Both the position numbers and the translations under genes were made by a program. Below, in pieces: positions 24,226 through 41,704 of a DNA stretch of 64,000 nt. Location of the stretch: NCBI GenBank assembly GCA_002104905.1, contig MCFE01000183.1, forward strand, positions 62,001 to 126,000, given 5' to 3'. Numbering within the stretch: the first letter of the stretch is position 1; each line of letters opens with the position of its first letter. The DNA is from Basidiobolus meristosporus CBS 931.73. Its lineage: Eukaryota > Fungi > Basidiobolomycota. The notes beneath the pieces were generated by a model. The model saw only the letters and a program-made list of their open reading frames with translations. It had not been told where the DNA came from and did no database searches.

Positions 24226-24719
24226 CACTATACGCGTGTGTCAACAGTGAAACGTGGACCTACGTTGAAGAGTGAAAAGTACTAGAAAGTTCACTATTTC
24301 TTGGATATCTTTGGAATTGATTTGATCTCGGTGAACCAAGGATCCTAGGCCATCGACTAATGAGATCCCCCTCTCTGCATCGACAGTGTGCCTTTCTTAA
24401 TTCATCCAGGAATGGTGCGGATCCGCATCCGGGGAATAAAATGAGGGAAATCCTCATCAGAAATATCGGAATTCGCTCCAGCGTCAGATCGCTTGGTCAG
24501 CGCCGCTGTGATTGGCCGTGGGTGCCAGCTCGAAATGAACAAAATTCACCGCGTAGCAGCGGGAGAACGGTCTTTTCTGTCGGTTGTCATCCTTCAGTAC
24601 TACGGTTAGTTCGAGTGGGTTTGAGGTCGCCGGAGATGGCGACATCGGACTGTTTCCGTTTCCATCCATCCACGGATGTGTGCTAACTTTCGTTGGTTCT
24701 TTCTCAGGGGAAACAGAAC

Positions 24720-25443
24720 ATGGCTCTTCCTGCTGAAATCACTGCCGAGGCTCAAGGCATCCAACTTTTCAACAAGTGGTCCTATGAAGACCTCGAGATC
24801 AAGGACATCTCCTTGACCGACTACCTCCAAATCAGAGCTCCTGTCTACTTGCCCCACACCGCCGGTAGATATGCTACCAAGAAGTTCAGAAAGGCCCAAG
24901 TACGTAGGTCGAATTGCTTGGGGCTGCGTGGATGATACTAACCGTTTGTGCTTTGCTAGTGCCCCATCGTTGAACGCCTCACCAACTCTCTTATGATGCA
25001 CGGCCGTAACAACGGAAAGAAGCTCATGGCTGTCCGTATCGTCAAGCACGCTTTCGAGATCATCAACCTTCTTACCGATCAAAACCCTCTTCAAGTCCTC
25101 ATTGATGCCATCATCAACTCCGGACCCCGCGAAGACTCCACCCGCATCGGTAGCTCTGGTACTGTTCGTAGACAAGCCGTTGATGTTTCTCCCTTGAGAA
25201 GAGTCAACCAAGCCATCCACCTTTTGACCACTGGTACTCGTGAGTCTGCCTTCAGAAATGTCAAGACCATTGCTGAATGCTTGGCTGATGAGCTCATCAA
25301 CGCCGCCAAGGGCTCCTCCAACAGTTACGCCATCAAGAAGAAGGACGAATTGGAGCGTGTCGCCAAGAGTAAGTCCCATCCCATGGTCCATGGACCGAGC
25401 AGCGACTGTGTACTAACCGATTTCCTCTTCAGGCAACCGTTAA
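24720..25443 (+). CDS. RPS5: 40S ribosomal protein uS7/S5
   Basis: Exons 24720-24899, 24960-25368, 25433-25443; KFRKAQ|[28 protein letters not shown]...[11 protein letters not shown]. Confidence 0.98.
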
Positions 25444-25618
25444 TTCTTGCGCCACCTTTTCGAGTTACTTGCTCATACTTTACACCGTCTTTGGATGAAG
25501 TAGAGCGTTATTTGACTCGGCATCACTTTAATAAACTCCTAAAAACCATACGGTCAGGCGTGTTTGTGGAGCGTTCGTCGCATTTGTAAAGAATGGATTT
25601 ATTGCTTTTGCACTGTGC

Positions 25619-28600
25619 TCATTTCTGGTTCAAAACTGAATAGCCTCTAGGCCCGTTGAGTCTTGATTGGGGCCTGGACTGGATTAGGGTGCGCGATGAT
25701 GCTGCTTGGGAGGTGCGGTTGGAGGGAGAGGAGTAGAACTGGTAGGGTGCAGTCCAGGAGGGTGCCCGATGATACAGCTGCCCGTGCATTGGACTGGGTG
25801 TGGAGTAGCGTGCATTTGGATGCGGCATATGTCCGAATTGATGGTAGCTGTAGGATGGGATGGAATAGACGGGGTTCATGCCAAATGAACGCGAGGCCTG
25901 TACCCGTGGGATATATGTCTGGCGTGCCTGGTGGTGAGGTTGATATCCAAGCGGGGAGACGGAGAGCGGCATAGAGTAATGGGAGAACTGTGGATGATAC
26001 AGGTCCATGGGATCGCTCATTGGTGGTATCGCGGTGGAGACGAATGTAGGGGCCCCGGTGCTGCCATTCTGATATGGACGAGGGCCACAGAGCTGGCTAT
26101 AGCGAAGCTTGCCTTGGTCGGTCATGTGGTCGCCCTCGCTGTGGTGTCTTTTCTGAAGCGACTTGTATTTGCTTGAGCCATCCAGCTCGCGGGCTTGATT
26201 CGGCATATAACGATGAGTGGGTTCGGCTGTGTATCTTATTGGCTCAACCACGACATCCTCGATGATCTCGTTCTCGTTGATTACGCTGAGCTCTCTACTC
26301 AGATTTGGTCCGTCGAGTCTGCCGTGCTTATAGTAGTGTGCATCGGAACCTGGTCTCAGAGTCTCAACCTCGTCGCTCGTGGAGCCACGTTTCTCAGTGC
26401 TCCATTCGTGCCAATGCTTGGTTGGGATATCGCCGGGGTCGAACTGCTCTACGTCTCTGCCGTGTTCGTCGCCACTGCTCAGACCGTCTATCTTTCTCGT
26501 GGTTCCCCAAGAGAAATCGTCGAAATGCCAGAACGCATATATGGGAAGGACAAAATTCCATATCGGCATGGCCAATATAAACACCACCATCCAGAGAACA
26601 TACCCCATCTTTCTGGTGGTCACGGCGATTAGTAGGCTCTGGAGGAAGAATACGATGCACATGAACAGTAGTGGCAGCCAGACATCGGCCCCAGTGAATG
26701 CAGCCAGGATCAGAAAGCAGAAGAAGACAAACGAGGCCGGCATGATGACCGTTCCGACTAGCTCCAGGAGGATCACGAACTGCATGGAGCAGCAAAAAAT
26801 CCCACATAGTTGTGGAACCAGGATCAGCTCCAGTAGATTGTGGATGGTGGAGTTGATCCAACGTCGACGCTGGCTCAGAAGCACTCGGAATTCATCTGGA
26901 ACCACCGTCTTGCAGATGGCTTTTGGCACGTATATCATCTTCCGCTTGGGAAAGGTACGGATCATCAGGGTCGTGAGGTAACGATCCTCTCCTAATAACA
27001 ACAGGTTTTTCTGGTGAAGCGTGGAGACATGGTTGGAGGAATACAGTGCCACGATCTCTGGATTGGCAAGCACCGGCACTGAGTAATCGCTACACTTCGG
27101 TGCCTTGATTCGATACATGCAAAAGCAGCCAGGTAGGCAGGTGACTCCACCAAATATCGATTCGAAAGCCTTCCCCAGATGATGCGAGATGTAGTACTCG
27201 TACACCTTGAATCGGGAATTGGTAGCTGTTAAGGACTGTCTGCGTAAAGAGCATGTAGACGCGTACTGTACCTGAATCATGGTCACCCAAGTTTGTTTCT
27301 TGTTTGCTACTTTGGTCTCTCCACAAAGCCCCATCACATTCGAATCTCGTTCCATCGCAGCCACCATCCGGCTGACACTGTCCTCCTCAACCAGAGTATC
27401 CGCATCTACCATCAGGACCATCTCGAATTGATCAGGTGTGAAACTCATCAGAATCCTGACTTTCTCGAACAATTCGTACTCTAGTGGATTCATCTTCTCA
27501 TTCAGACATATCTTGCTTAACCATCGCATCAGGATCAACTGCGAATCTCTCTTTCCGCGGTTTCCGGCCCTAGAAGTGGTTCTTTCGTTCGGGGTTCCGC
27601 ACTTGACCACCACCAATATTGGCACCCGATGCTCCTGGCAGCGGTAGAAGCCAGTGTACACCTGTGCCATGTTATGCTGTCGGGCACCGTCTCCTACCGC
27701 AATATAGGAAGCAGGCTCGGGAATTGCCGCGGCCGAGTCTAGCGGCTCTATGATGTCCAAAACGATGTTGGGAGTAGATTTGTCGTTCCCAGAGCCTATG
27801 ATATCCCCGTCGCATATCACGAAGAGCAGCTTGCTTTCATCCTCGTAACTGGTCAAGGCCAGCGAGTCCAAAGTCGTCCGTATCGAGTGTTCTCCCTCGG
27901 AGTAGCACGTGACAAGCAGGATAATGGGCTTGATTGGATCGGAGGGATTGGCCTTCTTTGAGATCTTCCCTAGCTTTTTGGACAAAAACCAGTCGAAGGC
28001 CACTGCCGAGGCAAATTTGATTAAGATGATACCCACGAGGATAACGCTGGACACCACAATCAGCAGGTTGGAGGCGAAGCAGCCGGTACTTGACCCCTCC
28101 ACCATCCCAACCATCAGCTGGTCTTCGAAGCAGGGAATCATGTTTTTCAAACCACGATCTCTCATGATGTCTCTGGTGGCGTCTCTTCCTATCAGCTTCA
28201 ACAACTTCGAGGTGAACTGGGCATCTCCCAGATAGGTTTCGTTATTGTACAGGTAAAGTTCGAGAGAGAAAACCTTGTCGTTGTACACGAATAGCTTTCT
28301 CTCTTTCTCCTGGATGGACTCCCAGGAGAAGGCGACGAAGTTCTGTATACTTAGGGACTCCAAGGTTTTTCGGGAGATCGGACTATTGTGGCAATGGTAG
28401 CGCTTGTCCATCCCTTCGAACGCACAACTAGGTCTCAGTGGCCACTTCCGGCACTTGGAGGCAAACTTGTCAATCGGAAAGAACTCACTAATATCATGCC
28501 CCAACAAGGGGTTGATCACCGAGGCCAGATCTTCGTCTTGGAAAGGAAGGATGGGCCTGTGGTAGCCAAAGCGGAAGTAGTCTCTGACATTATAGAGCCT

Positions 28601-30365
28601 GCCCCGAACGATCATAAGCTGCATTCCTTTGCCCTCAAACCCATATTTGTGGGCCACATCCTCGGCAAAGATGGGCGGGCTCTGGCGACAAACGACCGCT
28701 GAAAAGGTGAAAGTTAGGAAGCCAAAGAAGGCGGAGATCAGCAGAATTATTATACATAGGGAGACTTTTTCTCTCCAAGCTTGGCGCACATCCGAGTCGG
28801 TCAACTTCCCGCAATCAGCCAAACAGTGGTTTACACAGCAGCAGGTTAGAAGCTTCGAGGCAATCTCCCAGAGCCTTCTAGAATCGGACGGCTCCTCCTG
28901 GCTTCCCGCTATAGAAGGGTTGGTCATCATGCGGGGATGTGGCGGTGATCGCCGACGTTGAAACTCCGGCTCAATCAGTGGCTGGTGATTGTCGTACGAG
29001 GAACGCGATTGTCGCCGGTCAAGCTTGATTTGGAAGGGAGACTTGACATTCCAGCCGGACTTCTCGTTGGAGAAGCTTTCCCACTGGCTTTGCTCCCAGG
29101 AGCTCTCGTCCAAAGATTTGATGGATCTCGTAAAAGTTGACGTCGCAGGCCTTTGGTCGGCGATATGGAATTCGGATGACGCCTGTTTCCCGGAGCCTAG
29201 CCGGTAATTGTGGGATCTGATGTATTTGGTAGACAAGTTGGATCCCCGTGAGCTTCGGTGGCCGGTGAGAGTGATAGAGGAGACCGGGGAGCTCCTCGCG
29301 GTGCTAGGCTGCTCACTAATCGTGCTTGGGAACGGAGACAGAGTCGAGCTTCCAAGCTCTCTCGATAAGATTCGCGACTTCGGGCGAACGCTGAAGGGGA
29401 TTGGTGCGGGGATGGTAGGCCTTTTGCTGGGTACATTGGGGATTTCACAGTCGGCCAAGATCCGCACAATTGCCAAGCGGCTAGCATCCCGAGCCAGATC
29501 CTCTGCATTCTTGCCGTTATCGGTGGTAAGTGTGACGTCTGCGCCGTATTCCACGAGCTTTTGCACGACTGAAACCTTGCCTGCATGGGCCGCCAGCATC
29601 AGAGCTGACCAGCCGAACTAAGAAGTGGCAAATGTTAGGTGGTGCTAACCCCGATGGCCCAATCAGACACGAAGCACAAACCTTGTCCACACAGTCCACC
29701 TCGGCCCCCCGCTCCAGGAGCGCCTCCACCGTATCTTCGTAGCCCTCAAAGCTCGCGAAGCTTAAAGCGGTTTTCTGGGTGATGTCCCGATGATTGATGT
29801 TTGCATGGCCGATGCCCACTAAGAAGCAGCACAGCGACGCGTGGCCGTTGTAGGCGGCAATGATCAGCGGAGTGCTCAGCTCCTGGATAGAAACGGTAGA
29901 TTAGCCCCCTACCATCGGCCCCAACTAGTAGAAATACAACCTTACCCTGTTCTCAGCATCAGCATTGGCGCCGGCTTTGATCAACTGTTCGGCGGCCTCG
30001 CTAGCACCCGCCGCACAAGCTTTGTACAACGCAGTATTTCCTTCATTGTCTTTCTTGGAGATAGAATAAGTGAGCTGCATCCAGGGCATGGGGTTGTTAC
30101 ACGTCTAGAAGAAAACCAAACCTCTTAGCTCCAAGTCAACAGTGGGGTGGCTCGCAAGGAACTTCAACACCTTGATCCGATTTCGGAAAGCTGCCACCAT
30201 GAGAGGAGCACGACCATCCTCATCACGGATGTAGTTCAGGTCAAACTGCTTTTGGTTAAATATCTCACAAACTCTATCTACATCGTCTTGATTTATTGCC
30301 TGGAAGAACTCCACCACTGGGTCCGAAGAGGGGGAAATGCTATACCATGTCGGTATGCGGGACAT
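25619..30365 (-). CDS. Division-2 (class IV-like) chitin synthase with ~6 N-terminal ankyrin repeats, ~1493 aa
   Basis: Exons 30365-30122, 30049-29946, 29882-29682, 29617-27272, 27205-25619 (phases 1,0,0,0; total 4482 nt). Motifs GNRGKRDSQ, MVDADT, LGEDRYLT, QRRRW; cytochrome-b5-like segment (VRGRLYNV); TM helices; no myosin motor. Confidence 0.92.
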
Positions 30366-31329: not shown

Positions 31330-32185
31330 ATGCACTGTGCTGGCTCAGCTTTTGGAGATGCCGAAACACTCATTGGTACGTATTTTCTTGACCAAGCCCT
31401 TATAAGCCGGCTAATAGCTGAGTTATGTCTCTGTAGATGCAGCGGAATATGTTGTCGACAGGGTCTGGCGTCCCTTCAACTCAGTCTCAGATTCAAATCG
31501 CTTGGATTTGCGAGAATTTGTCCGAGAAACGGTCAACGCTTCGCAAACAGCCCATTCAACAACGATCCTCTCACTCTATTATATGTACAAGCTGCGCGGA
31601 GCTGTCCATAAGATGATGTTCGGCCGAGAGTATACACCGTTAGAGGCCAGCGGCTGGAAGGGGATGCACAATATCACGTCCCCATTTGACGAAGATGGAT
31701 TTGAGCAACAGGCTTCATTGGAACCCAATGCCCAGCAGCGGCTGTACTTCGCAAAGAATACTTTTGTTGGCGCACTGATAGTGGCCTCGAAATACCATCA
31801 AGAAAACAACCCTTTCAATATGGATTGGGCGCGTTACACAAGCTCCACTTTGGCACAGGTCAACGATTTGGAAATGGAATTTCTTGACTGCATCCAGTAT
31901 GATCTTCACGTGTCCAAGGAGGAATATGAGCTATGGACCGTCGAGCTCTGGCGAGAGGTCCAAGAGGCCGTGCGCAGTAAATGGAGGGCTCACAAGCGCG
32001 CCTCTACTGGGAAGGCAAAGTCATCAGCGAGGCACCATCATCATGTGAGCAATCCTTACACAAGTAGCCTCCGCTTCGACTCTAGAAGGCATGACCAACA
32101 CGCCTCCAGCAACGAGGAACGTGAGCTCATTATCCCGATCGAACGAGCGGTTTCTGCTCAAATCAGGCACTTTGTCAGGGACTAG
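31330..32185 (+). CDS. Pho85-type (Pcl/Clg1-like) cyclin; 5' end uncertain
   Basis: Exon 31330-31375, intron 31376-31436, then FVRETV..SQT..STTILSLYYMYKL...FVGALIVASKY...N..WARY.....VNDLEMEFL..IQYDLHV (cyclin box). Confidence 0.8.
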
Positions 32186-36547: not shown

Positions 36548-38956
36548 CTAACCAAACATTATTCTCAAATACAGATACACGAGGCAACCCAAAAACTTAA
36601 AGGCAGATAAGCCGGCCATGGACCAAAAGATGAAGTCCAGGTAGGGTCTAGAGCTGACATAGTCCCCAGCAATGCTGTGAATCCACCCGTTGACAACTTC
36701 CGACTGGAACGCTAGGATCAGTACCACATTGCTGAACATCCAAGTAAGCACCGTACGTGTACGGAACAGCCGGTAGTAGTCTTCGCGTTTGGTAGCCGCA
36801 TCGGTTTGTTGCTTCTCCGGCTCGGGCTTCACTTGGAGGTCGGAGAGCAAGTCGGCGTAGAGCGCATTGACATCCTGTTTCTCGGTGGGCACCTCGACGG
36901 TCGCTACCTCGACTCCCTTCTTGTTGGTAAGGGAGGTGACATTTCCGAGATTGGCCGACGCATTGTTGTCACCTTTGGTGCCCCAGGAGACATCGTGCGT
37001 GTTGCAGAAAGCGTACACCATAAGGATGCACACGTAGGATGGGAAAATGAACATGTACTGTACGAAGGAGGTGAACATGTGCCACGGCTCGAAGTACAAA
37101 AACGACGAGAGGAAGTACAGCCCGTACGTGGAGGCCACCGCAATAAAGATGTTGACCGTCTCTTTGGTGAAGGGCTGTTTCAGTAGGTTGTTGTACACGT
37201 CGGGATTGCTGAAGTAGACCGTTAGGTTAAATCCGATGGTATACAGCATAATGGCCATCACGAAAGCAAACAGATAGACGCAGAGGAGGTAGATGATCTT
37301 GGAGCCTTGCGGACGGTTCCCAAGAGAAAGGACGAACTGCACAATAATCCCCAACAGGAAGATCTCTCGAACAATGGAGTAGACATACTTCGATTTATGG
37401 AAGAACGGGTCTGGGCCATCGTTATCGTCGGAGGAATTCTGTTGACCCATGAAGTAGAAGGTAAGATAGAAATTACCCAGCGCGAACCAGGAGAAGAATA
37501 AATTAATGACGTTATAAATAAACTGGATCATAAACAGTCCCTTGCGAAAGAGGCCATGGTTCGTTCTCCATATCTGGAACCAATGGGCCGTGGCAAAGAA
37601 GGCAGCGAACAAAGAGCCATTCAACCATCGACGACGTTGAGAAATGAACTCGGGCCAATTATCCGGTACGTCGGTCTCTGCCTTGGCCGATTTCACGTAT
37701 TTGAGAACCCATTTGCTGTTCTTCTTGGCGCACAGTTCAAAGCAGAGAATACGATCTTCCGCCAGATACATGTTGGCTTCAAAGATACCCCCAGTGGCAT
37801 CCGCTCCATGCATCGTCTCTCCCTTGAAGTAGGACGCGAGAGGACCAATTCCGGGGGCAGTGTTCTTTAAAGCCGCGTATCTGTATGCGGAGAACGCACC
37901 GGGAAGAACACTGATGTATCCAAACACACTCTCCAACGGCTTATCCAGGATGTTGCTCATTTTGTACTCGAAATTTTGCGCAGCAACCAACGGGTTCCAA
38001 AGGTTGGAGCAGCCGGTGCCCAGCTCCACGCAGATCTCACCGCACGCGCCACCTACGCTTGGATTCCTGTCGAATGCCTTCCACAGGTGGTAGATCGAGG
38101 TGCCACTGGGACGTGTTCCGACATCCAGCAAGATACACACGTTGGGATTCAGCAGCGGAGCAAAAGCGTTGAAAAACCAGCGATGGGAGTTCAGCTTTTT
38201 GGCATTCTTCTCCTTCAAACAGAAAACCATTTGGATGGGCACGAAGTCCTGCTCAGCAATCGAGTGCACCCTCATATCACTGTCGAGATAAAGCTGGGAG
38301 GTGTATTCGTAGATGTGCGCGGTGACACCCTTCCCGTTGACGGTGCTTTGCGCTATGCCGTCCTGATACACGCCCATGGCGCCTAAAACCTTGAGCACCC
38401 GAGGATGCACCTTGGTACGGCCGTCTGCGACCACACAAACAACACATTTCTTCCACCCCTCATTCCCCCAAACCTTGGACTTGGAACGGTTGCATAGATG
38501 GCGGATATTCTTGATTACACCGGTGAAGGTTTTGACAAAGAGCTGCTCATCTTCGTTGTACATGGTCATCACGATAAACAGCTCCGTGGTGCGGCCAAAC
38601 ATTGCTGGACGCAGGGTGTATCTATTCTGTAAAAAGTCGTTTGGATCACAGGTAGCCGCGGTATACCGCATGGTTTCAAACTCTTCTCCCCTGTTAGGGG
38701 CTTTCTCCAGGATTTTGTCGGCAATTGGACACTCGATGACCAGGTTTCCAGAGATCAGCTCTATATGCCGGATACTCTTACGGCGATCCTCGATGTATTG
38801 TCTGTATCTTCGGGAGCCTGGGGGAGGGGCCACATTCGCGTTGTAAAGCTCTTCTATATGCCCCGGCGCCGGATCTCTGAAAGGATCCTCGGTCGGGTGT
38901 TCGTAGTTATCATAGGCTAACGGATGGTTGGAGTAAGGCTGGCGATAGTTACTCAT
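36548..38956 (-). CDS. Division-1 (class I/II/III) chitin synthase, intronless, 802 aa
   Basis: First ATG at 38956; [68 protein letters not shown]. Confidence 0.95.
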
Positions 38957-41149
38957 TTGGAGGGAAGGAGTGGAAGCCAATGTCTTTCAAAGACCTGATG
39001 TGGCGAGTGGATTAGGCGAGGATGAAGGGTTTTAGGGCACTCTGGGGTAGCTTATAGTGTCTGGTTTGGGTGCGGAGTTTATATGTTGATTCGACTGTTT
39101 AAAGGAACACTGATTTAAATGGTGTCACATCACCCTGCCACAAATTAACGCAAGCCCACTAATCTCTTTGCACTTGTGAAATCAAATCACAATTGTAGAA
39201 GTGGTTTCGAGCTAATTTCCGAGCACCCAATGCTTGAGAACGAGCATGTAGTGTGGTATTGTAATCTCCATATTGGCGATGAATTCCCAAATTAGGCGAG
39301 TGGTTTACCTGCATTTGGAAATCCCATGACAGCTCCATATTCCCTTAGAGTGATACGTATTTTTGACAACGGGTAGTTGCTGTTTGTGCGCGAACTGACG
39401 TAGAAGGCGTGCACCTTCGCCACTTATGCCCAGCTTTGCTCTTTTACGTCCAAGTTATGTGAGGCTGGCATTGATCGACCTGTGCAGGAATTGTAATCGG
39501 AAGCGATACATTGCGCCGGTTGGAGTGATTGATCCCACTTACGCAGCATCAATCAGGTGCGATGAATCAAGGCGATGTCTCGTGCTGGCAAGCGAGTGCA
39601 AACAGCCAATTGTCCTGTCTGTGGCTATGCATTGGAAGCACCCGCACTGTTCAATCTTGCAAGTTTACATACACTGTGTCTATTTTCACTGCGCTCGCGG
39701 CATGCGTGCAGAGGCACTGGCGCACGAATTTAAAAATACACGGATCTTCCAAATGTACCCGTCGTCCTGTGTTCCATTTCGAAACGACGGTCGTCGAGTT
39801 CATCCGCAACCGATTTCAGTGGTTAGGGATTGGTGGGCAGTTCGAAAATAGATCCCCTAAAAATAACCATGGCTTGGATAGCCGCCCCTATACACCAATC
39901 ACATCTACAGGAGTGATTAGTGATTGCATCCAAAATGGCCTATTTTTAGATTGGGTCGCGGACTATACCAAGGGAAGTTAGCCTCTGGCATGTTGGGTCG
40001 TCGATATTTCTGCTCACCAGACTAACCCTCATAATGCCAGAGTTGGATTATCCAAGGAGCCCAATCGCACCCCCGACAAGCCCAATGGAACGGCGTTTAA
40101 CGTCCAATAGTCCACCTTGTGTCAGAAATTCTCCTCGCTGTCTGTTTTCATTATACTCCAGCGACAATAGGGATCGCAGAAAATCGACCTAAGCGATCAA
40201 CCTACAATCTGGATGCCATCCCTTGGCGTGGTAACAATATGAGCCTTAGGGAAGACCGTGACCAAGTAGGACTAGCTGAGATCCACACCCACGTGAGTGA
40301 TCATGTTTGCTCTTGGCCCACCTGATGCTCAAATGGTCATTCATCGAAACTTATTAATCCACAGATGCTTAATGCAGTCTTATCGGCGACTCTCTTGCAC
40401 CTAATGTAGGCGGCGTCCAGCGAATCATCTGGCCTTGATCGTGTGATAAATCGGATGAATGAGGGTTTGGGACGGCAGCCCTCAAATGAGAGGGTTTCAT
40501 TTGCCAGGGCCAGTCGTACATCCGCACTTAATCCGCGAAGTAATGGCTCAGCATATGTCGGAGTTGATTGTACGGGGATCAGCAGAAGTGATCCGTTTTA
40601 GAGTGGTCTATATGGCATCCACTTAATGTCTATCCGATATCACACTAATGCTTCTGCATACACAGGAAACAGGGGCTATGCTATGTGCCAAATCCCAATA
40701 ATATTGACTTCCAAATAGAAACCTGTTCCACTCTAGAATCACTGATATGATATCTATAATAACTGGTTGATTCAAATAAATAATGGCATCAAGGGCTGAG
40801 TGGATTAAGGCCACTCCCCGATTTCTAATCCTGACATCTTGAACTAATCTAGTAGTTCATATGATACCATAATTGGTCAGCAGATCATCAGAATAGATAG
40901 AATGGAGACTGTATTCCTACCGGTTTGTGCTTCATTATTAAAATAAAAACAAGAAAAAAAAGCGCGGGCCTCGTGACTCTCCTTACCTGCTATATAACGC
41001 TCAAGACGCCTACGTTGTGCACTAAAATCCCACTCACGAATTCTCTCCCAGGGAATCTTGAAGAAGGCCGTTTTCACAAAAGCCGTTCCAACAGAATTTC
41101 CTTCGAGACTAGTCTTGAAATTCCCCAGATAGCATTTTCAACTATTGCT

Positions 41150-41704
41150 ATGTCTTGCACTGTTCTCCCCTCTAAACAGATTGCCGATTATAAGCCTCTT
41201 CCTGACCCACTCATCAGTAAGTGAGGACTCCATGCTAAGCTTCACACCCATGTCCTAACAATATCAACTTTAGATTTCACCACCGAGTTCTTGTGTGGGA
41301 TTTTAAACTGCAAGCAGAGGCCACTGCGCCAAACCCAAATGCCAGAACTGCTACTCTTCGTCACTCGGGTAGCAGAACGCTCACGCATAAGCATCTTTAC
41401 CGGAGTTATCGCGCTGATTTATCTGTATCGACTGAAAGCGAGGCTTCCTGCCAAGGCGCAGGGGGAATACGGCACATCACATAGACTGTTTCTCGCCAGC
41501 ATACTGGTCGCATCGAAATATCTTTATGGCCCCGAAGGACTAAGCAATCGTACCATGGCCGAGGTATCTGGCGTTTTCAATTCGACTGAAGTAAGCAGGA
41601 TGGAAGAGGAGTTTCTGAAGTTGCTTGACTACAGAGTTTGGGTCAACGATCAGGAGCTCCGACTATTCCTGGAGGAGCACAAATCCGAGCTGTACTTGAT
41701 TTAA
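41150..41704 (+). CDS. Small Pho85-type (Pcl1/Pcl2-like) cyclin
   Basis: Exon 41150-41216, intron 41217-41273, exon 41274-41704; IALIYLYRLK..LP..AQG...T.HRLFLASILVASKYL...N..MA..SGVF...EV.RME.EFL.LLDY. Confidence 0.85.

Follow-up and report, generated by a model that had tools for sequence, protein, structure and literature searches.

The 64,000-nucleotide (nt) stretch of Basidiobolus meristosporus CBS 931.73 DNA analyzed here (the window; contig MCFE01000183.1, positions 62,001 to 126,000 of the forward strand) contains a chitin synthase (CHS) gene whose predicted product begins with an array of ankyrin (Ank) repeats. The gene, here designated Ank-CHS, lies on the minus strand (30365..25619) and was modeled with four short GT-AG introns separating five exons, giving a protein of 1493 amino acids (aa) (Table 1). 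From the N to the C terminus, the protein comprises seven Ank repeats, a linker of ~180 to 200 aa, a first transmembrane segment (TM1), a cytochrome b5-like CHS4 domain, a second transmembrane segment (TM2), a Chitin_synth_2 domain, C-terminal TM segments, and a tail. The model was derived by reading the sequence and by comparison with the 1515-aa Basidiobolus ranarum ortholog (P0001). The locus is very probably one gene, encoding a division-2, superclass-IV-type CHS whose true N terminus is a seven-repeat Ank solenoid, and we hold it to be nearly certain that the Ank-CHS architecture and the clade that carries it are real.

Table 1. Positions of the parts of the Ank-CHS gene and of its neighbors in the window and, in the last two rows, of the P0284 open reading frame (ORF) on two other contigs
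Feature	Position	Strand	Remarks
Exon 1	30122..30365	(-)	244 nt; ATG at 30365; capping Ank repeat and repeat 2 (MSRIPTWY...DGRAPLMVAA...VDLELR); Pfam Ank_2/Ank_4
Intron 1	30050..30121	(-)	72 nt; phase 1; GTTTGG...AAAG; in-frame stop inside
Exon 2	29946..30049	(-)	104 nt; Ank repeat 3 (DNEGNTALYKACAAG...)
Intron 2	29883..29945	(-)	63 nt; phase 0; GTAAGG...CCAG; CTAAT branch site
Exon 3	29682..29882	(-)	201 nt; Ank repeats 4 and 5 (ELSTPLIIAAYNGH..., QKTALSFASFEGY...); Pfam Ank E=7e-13
Intron 3	29618..29681	(-)	64 nt; phase 0; GTTTGT...TTAG; CTAAC branch site; retention gives a frameshift
Exon 4	27272..29617	(-)	782 codons, aa 184-965; repeats 6-7 through the first part of the glycosyltransferase family 2 (GT2) domain with GKRDSQ and DADT
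Ank repeats 6-7	about 29438-29617	(-)	Exon 4; FGWSALMLAAHAGK...DNGKNAEDLA...
Linker	about 28847-29437	(-)	Exon 4; S/P/R-rich, predicted disordered
TM1	about 28685-28774	(-)	Exon 4
CHS4 domain	about 28106-28336	(-)	Exon 4
TM2	about 27980-28093	(-)	Exon 4
Intron 4	27206..27271	(-)	66 nt; in frame, stop-free; interrupts catalytic QXXEY (MIQ/VYEYY)
Exon 5	25619..27205	(-)	Remaining catalytic domain (EDRYLT, QRRRW), C-terminal TM bundle, SWG, tail; stop codon 25619-25621
C-terminal TM bundle	about 26528-26845	(-)	Exon 5
Ribosomal protein S5/uS7 gene	24693-25589	(+)	Intron-containing; convergent with Ank-CHS, ~30 nt from its stop codon
Cyclin-like gene	31502-32185	(+)	Head to head with Ank-CHS
Division-1 CHS gene	36548-38980	(-)	Chitin_synth_1N/1; ~6 kb upstream of Ank-CHS
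Second cyclin-like ORF	41291-41704	(+)	Near the division-1 CHS gene
P0284 ORF, contig L004	1630-6645		JGI metagenome 3300042649
P0284 ORF, contig L005	1054-6069		Logan run SRR14710900

An ORF of 1326 aa (25619..29599, minus strand) opens inside an Ank repeat (MLAAHAGKVSVVQKLVEYGADVT...) and is stop-free across the whole enzyme. An earlier note on this DNA had placed the last Ank repeat in one frame with the enzyme; this holds, with every motif in its place. The note had also proposed three GT-AG introns with phases 1, 0, and 0 that add further repeats upstream, and these agree with introns at the same positions and phases in B. ranarum and with Ank matches in the three upstream exons. Its product length of 1493 aa is exact once a fourth, in-frame intron of 66 nt is also removed. 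The enzyme appears uninterrupted in an ORF scan because intron 4 is in frame and has no stops; when read through, it contributes 22 spurious residues, and it is also spliced out of the public model of this gene, K493DRAFT_283022 (P0002). Read-through of introns 1 to 3 was ruled out on the basis of the in-frame stops in introns 1 and 2 and the frameshift from intron 3. The spliced product and the annotated ortholog from B. ranarum are collinear across residues 1 to 1490 (78% identity). K493DRAFT_283022 (979 aa) is 98% identical to the 1326-aa ORF and begins at an internal Met (MQLMIVRG), 514 residues downstream of the modeled start. It lacks the ankyrins, the linker, TM1, and the QAWREK region, the last of which is conserved among the division-2 relatives compared. 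By this comparison, K493DRAFT_283022 is a truncated annotation.

In B. meristosporus, Ank repeats 6 and 7 share exon 4 with the enzyme, and since one and a half repeats would not fold on their own, upstream repeats are needed. All four introns are found at identical codon positions and phases in B. ranarum (locus L001), where they measure 98, 57, 62, and 61 nt. Exons 1 to 3 have equal lengths in the two species and 72 to 78% nucleotide identity (78% for exon 1), and for the exons as a whole the range is 71 to 78%, without indels; the introns are 56 to 61% identical and vary in length. The position and phase of intron 1 are found again in Syncephalis fuscata, and Blastocladiella emersonii has an intron at the position equivalent to that of intron 2, before ..TPL. 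As mapped by tblastn blocks, residues 101 to about 946 in B. emersonii form a single exon that holds repeats 3 to 7, the linker, both TM segments, CHS4, and most of GT2. In P0284, a relative of Entomophthora by its place in the tree, the whole Ank-CHS is an intronless ORF of 1671 codons, recovered on two independent contigs. Because of the shared exon in B. meristosporus, the Blastocladiella exon, and the intronless P0284, the fusion does not depend on any splice prediction.

In the Pfam comparison, Chitin_synth_2 (PF03142) matched above its gathering score (746 bits, E=2.5e-224; cut-off, 27) and CHS4 (PF22997) matched with E=1.6e-13. The Ank, Ank_2, and Ank_4 profiles matched the translations of all three upstream exons, the best with E=7e-13, and no match to the myosin head (PF00063) or DEK_C (PF08766) domain was found in the product. 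The region previously called cytochrome b5-like is present, but its Pfam name here is CHS4, and PF00173 is significant only in some relatives. The spliced product carries GKRDSQ at aa 871, DADT at aa 921, EDRYLT at aa 1038, and QRRRW at aa 1077, and the QVYEY of the QXXEY motif is assembled across intron 4; QXXEY, EDRXL, and QXRRW are all present, together with the DXD-type motif for donor binding (DADT). The C-terminal tail encoded by exon 5 is of low complexity and ~300 aa long.

A hydropathy scan of the B. meristosporus protein identified two spans before GT2 (TM1, residues 465-494; TM2, residues 692-729) and the C-terminal bundle at residues 1086-1191. An AlphaFold2 (AF2) model covering residues 1-720 of the ortholog, built on a 15-sequence alignment, contains seven helix pairs at residues 16-239 with a predicted local distance difference test score (pLDDT) above 90, which are read as the seven Ank repeats, including the caps. 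In the same model, the segment at residues 243-425 has a pLDDT below 50, and an amphipathic pre-TM stretch, TM1 (457-492), an alpha/beta region that includes CHS4, and TM2 (692-719) are also seen. To use UDP-N-acetylglucosamine, GT2 has to be on the cytosolic side. With two spans between the Ank domain and the cytosol-facing GT2, the Ank solenoid should be cytosolic and the CHS4 region extracytosolic. The array thus does lie, as the earlier note had it, where the class V/VII enzymes carry a myosin motor: it is N-terminal, with two TM segments before the catalytic domain, and presumably on the cytosolic side.

A search of fungal proteomes for Ank together with Chitin_synth_2, which the note had proposed, gave the same domain order in more than 25 species, where the Ank, CHS4, and Chitin_synth_2 domains are visible as automatic Pfam matches in public proteomes. 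Ank-CHS enzymes were found in B. ranarum (two paralogs), Entomophthora muscae, and S. fuscata; in B. emersonii, with a truncated model from Paraphysoderma that starts within an Ank repeat; and in Endogone sp. and Calcarisporiella thermophila. In the Glomeromycotina, they are present in Rhizophagus irregularis, Glomus, Funneliformis, Gigaspora, Dentiscutata, Cetraspora, Racocetra, Diversispora, Acaulospora, Entrophospora, Ambispora, Geosiphon, and Paraglomus, several of these fungi having two paralogs. Both paralogs carry the array in Basidiobolus and in Glomeromycotina. This distribution comes from word-indexed searches, so that absences are lower-bound statements; the searches showed no Ank-CHS in Dikarya, Mortierella, Coemansia, or chytrids, and no Mucorales protein was among the clade-level matches.

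A query limited to TM1-CHS4-TM2 gave a step in the scores. The 40 best matches (at least 261 bits) were Ank-CHS enzymes or short or partial models, and all of these that were placed on the tree fall inside the Ank-CHS clade; at 246 bits or less came class IV enzymes without Ank, from chytrids, Allomyces, Coemansia, Mortierella, Dikarya, and the same early-diverging species. A HMMER search of 1.84 billion representatives with a profile of the N-terminal 720 residues recovered only P0016, P0039, P0007, and P0030 as clade members and is uninformative on distribution because giant multi-ankyrin proteins outscore them by summed repeats. An ESM Atlas feature search with residues 1-720 returned only generic ankyrin clusters, with scores below 0.9. 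In NCBI records, several CHSs of early-diverging fungi (P0001, P0005, P0007, P0282, P0305, and P0355), Ank-CHS included, are named "ATP-dependent RNA helicase." The name is plainly wrong and looks like a propagated error that hides the proteins from text searches.

Phylogenetic trees, likewise suggested earlier, were built from the QAWREK-to-SWG region with the Ank part excluded; they are quick-search trees with support given solely by the Shimodaira-Hasegawa-like approximate likelihood ratio test (SH-aLRT). In the first tree, all 19 of the 19 Ank rows fell into one clade (SH-aLRT, 96), and the branching order tracked the species phylogeny. In a 63-row tree rooted with myosin CHSs, the Ank-CHS clade comprised 35 rows (93) with Rozella as its sister (92) and spanned Blastocladiomycota, Zoopagomycota, Glomeromycotina, Endogone, and Calcarisporiella. 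The canonical class IV enzymes formed a separate clade (99) that includes those of Ascomycota and Basidiomycota, with the Calycina, Dendrothele, and Rhodotorula enzymes among its members, and two other enzymes of B. meristosporus; Ank-CHS falls outside it. A branch with 100% support unites the Ank clade and canonical class IV against the myosin CHSs. These trees show an old, largely vertically inherited Ank-CHS clade of Blastocladiomycota, Zoopagomycota, and part of Mucoromycota that is distinct from canonical class IV. In line with superclass IV, PF22997 is flanked by TM1 and TM2, PF00063 and PF08766 are absent, and the enzyme groups with class IV. Its separate clade beside canonical class IV justifies the term "a CHS subclass."

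Five rows inside the clade have no Ank match: one is a partial model, two are ~800 to 850 aa long, and two look full length. The last two are P0287 (Ambispora gerdemannii, 1534 aa), which has 867 aa before CHS4, and P0289 (Syncephalis plumigaleata, 1151 aa), which has 338 aa before CHS4. These could be mis-merged or mis-started models or could reflect genuine replacement or loss of the ankyrins. Most Ank-less clade rows are probably annotation artifacts, because the public model of the B. meristosporus gene itself proved to be truncated, with real losses being possible.

Canonical class IV enzymes (superclass IV [PMC5122149]; e.g., Saccharomyces cerevisiae Chs3) resemble Ank-CHS in having Chitin_synth_2 with QXXEY, EDRXL, and QXRRW, a CHS4/b5-like domain between two N-terminal TM segments, and neither a myosin motor nor DEK_C. 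Ank-CHS differs from them in the seven-repeat Ank domain and long linker before TM1; the two form separate clades, B. meristosporus has both, and the search did not find Ank-CHS in Dikarya. In the study by Goncalves et al. (2016), class IVc consists of Mucorales only (PMC5122149). The class V/VII myosin-motor CHSs are division-2 enzymes that, like Ank-CHS, have a large cytosolic N-terminal module before TM1, followed by b5-like and catalytic domains, and this module is thought to steer delivery and site specificity (PMC5122149). In Ank-CHS the module is an ankyrin solenoid and not a motor, and the catalytic domains of the two groups lie on different branches. Oomycete CHSs carry an N-terminal MIT domain, and the structure of a relative, PsChs1 (7wjm), has been solved. 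They are similar to Ank-CHS in having a small cytosolic interaction or trafficking domain at the N terminus. The domain itself is unrelated, however, and they belong to another lineage, with catalytic domains that are only distantly similar (E about 1e-9). In the TRPA, TRPV, and NOMPC channels and in the Akr1/zDHHC17 palmitoyltransferases, an ankyrin array before the first TM segment offers a surface on which partners or the cytoskeleton dock or are tethered; the parallel with Ank-CHS is one of analogy, with no homology beyond the repeats.

B. meristosporus and B. ranarum were compared region by region, using raw proportions of nonsynonymous (pN) and synonymous (pS) differences with synonymous sites saturated (pS about 0.8). 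The amino acid identity of the Ank region was 82% (pN, 0.09), compared with 92% (0.05) for the core enzyme, 61% (0.23) for the linker, and 56% (0.25) for the C-terminal tail. As estimated from these two sequences, the Ank domain is under purifying selection, with a constraint nearly equal to that of the enzyme. In an alignment of 15 sequences from three phyla (A2), the invariant Ank columns include D182, G185, and W186, which form DxxGW in repeat 6, and K219 of the GK in the last repeat. From general knowledge of ankyrins and of the design of designed ankyrin repeat proteins (DARPins), we take the residue after the Gly in GW and GK to point into the binding groove, and the invariance of these positions would fit a conserved ligand.

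In yeast, the cytosolic N terminus of Chs3 is involved in oligomerization, exit from the endoplasmic reticulum (ER), and sorting by exomer and AP-1, and the activity and placement of Chs3 need Chs7, Chs4/Skt5, and Chs5/6 in trans. In the class V/VII enzymes, the fused myosin motor influences delivery. For the Ank domain, a role in targeting or regulation is the likeliest, although we regard it as an evenly balanced proposition. The cytosolic solenoid, held on a predicted disordered linker of ~180 to 200 residues, would be a tethered module for protein-protein interaction and would bring a conserved partner to Ank-CHS. Candidates for this partner are an adaptor in trafficking, a landmark at the cortex or on the cytoskeleton, and an activator, and its binding would determine the place or the time of the synthase's delivery or activation. 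The module could then be a built-in adaptor for a step akin to that served by the class V/VII myosin motor or, in trans for Chs3, by Chs4/Skt5 and exomer. In S. fuscata (L003, 1-801 and 3001-7470), Ank-CHS lies head to head with a Chs7 homologue (PF12271). PF12271 is the family to which Chs7, the dedicated ER export chaperone of yeast Chs3, belongs, and this neighbor fits a Chs3-like handling of Ank-CHS.

More tentatively, Ank-CHS may be an ancient, unnamed CHS class that dates from the ancestor of Blastocladiomycota and the terrestrial fungi and in which a conserved cytosolic partner, bound by the solenoid, gates chitin synthesis or sets its position. It would represent a third targeting solution beside myosin motors and trans-acting Chs4/exomer, lost in Dikarya, with two copies retained by arbuscular mycorrhizal fungi and by Basidiobolus. 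If true, the loss in Dikarya would explain why work on model fungi missed Ank-CHS.

Several points weigh against the gene model and the role proposed here. The support for the splicing and for the use of the ATG at 30365 is comparative, and the public Joint Genome Institute (JGI) model begins 514 residues later, such that a shorter isoform may arise from an internal promoter. The topology is argued by parity, with hydropathy and the AF2 model as its basis, no binding partner emerges from the present results, and the long linker, as predicted, suits a tethered adaptor and an autoinhibitory or oligomerizing module equally.

The main functional rival to a targeting partner is a role in cis, in which the solenoid is an autoinhibitory lid or a dimerization or oligomerization module and does not recruit a partner in trans. 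We consider this unlikely, though well worth weighing. The long flexible linker would permit fold-back onto the cytosolic GT2, the Chs3 N terminus has been implicated in oligomerization, and the structures solved for division-1 and oomycete CHSs are dimeric; the conserved, groove-facing GW and GK cannot discriminate binding in cis from binding in trans.

It is a good deal less probable that the gene is as modeled but its main product is an Ank-less enzyme from an internal start, the ankyrin isoform being minor or stage specific. The internal Met at which the JGI model begins could be such a start, and four clade members (P0283, P0285, P0287, and P0289) are annotated without Ank. However, a start after TM1 would delete a conserved membrane span, the Ank-less members are mostly short or partial models, and the Ank region is under strong purifying selection and has been retained over three phyla.

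Very little credence can be given to the idea that the Ank exons are a separate upstream gene and the fusion an artifact of merged gene models. The public 979-aa model does lack the ankyrins, and our gene model rests on comparison, but that public model also lacks TM1 and QAWREK and hence is simply truncated. The last two repeats are in a stop-free exon with the enzyme, Blastocladiella has repeats 3 to 7 and the enzyme in one exon, the intronless ORF of L004 and L005 holds both parts, and the domain order recurs in more than 25 species. No more credible is a decaying, functionless remnant of domain shuffling, given the 82% identity and pN of 0.09 against saturated synonymous sites, seven repeats that are predicted to fold at a pLDDT above 90, and the persistence of the array in Basidiobolus and in Glomeromycotina, in both paralogs of each.

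In 8.1 million PMC papers and bioRxiv, the literature covered here (subscription-only papers lay outside the search), none of the papers with "chitin synthase" in the title ties "ankyrin" to the enzyme; the sole title match, a Plasmodiophora genome paper, treats ankyrins as effectors only. Neither "ankyrin" nor an "Ank" domain occurs in Pacheco-Arjona 2014, Li 2016, Goncalves 2016, a 2025 review, or a 2026 paper on chytrid CHSs, and combinations of CHS, ankyrin, and taxon names gave no paper. Expansions of protein families in early-diverging fungi were surveyed in a 2022 paper, which treats both families, but separately. In Goncalves et al., the early-diverging sampling covers only three Mucorales, Allomyces, and two chytrids, and division 2 is described with only b5-like, myosin, and DEK_C domains (PMC5122149). 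The earlier suggestion of an undescribed CHS subclass thus stands as regards the clade of its own and the lack of a describing paper in this literature, yet the domain matches sit precomputed in databases for more than 25 species, and the architecture is not unique to B. meristosporus. The 1999 paper on a class IV gene of Glomus versiforme could concern a member of the Ank-CHS clade.

Chitin synthases have a central part in fungal morphogenesis and serve as antifungal targets. What is accepted about their classification and their cell biology derives almost wholly from Dikarya and a few Mucorales, and Ank-CHS occurs in arbuscular mycorrhizal fungi, insect-killing Entomophthorales, Basidiobolus (a cause of human basidiobolomycosis), and Blastocladiomycota. 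A conserved, built-in Ank module would point to a targeting or regulatory mechanism that is missing from the model systems, and the Ank domain could be used as bait for the chitin-placing machinery of coenocytic early-diverging fungi. Public gene models of the clade are often truncated or misnamed, which may partly explain why the architecture went unnoticed.

The genes neighboring Ank-CHS in the window are included in Table 1. Further upstream of Ank-CHS are Pex2/12, TrAA12, and division-1 CHS genes. In B. ranarum L001, a division-1 CHS, TrAA12, Pex2/12, and a 258-aa gene without a Pfam match lie upstream, and a ribosomal S7-family gene lies downstream. The division-1 CHS, TrAA12, Pex2/12, and ribosomal genes match those of the window, and the ribosomal gene is placed relative to Ank-CHS as it is in B. 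meristosporus. In B. meristosporus, Ank-CHS and the division-1 CHS each have a cyclin-like ORF nearby on the opposite strand.

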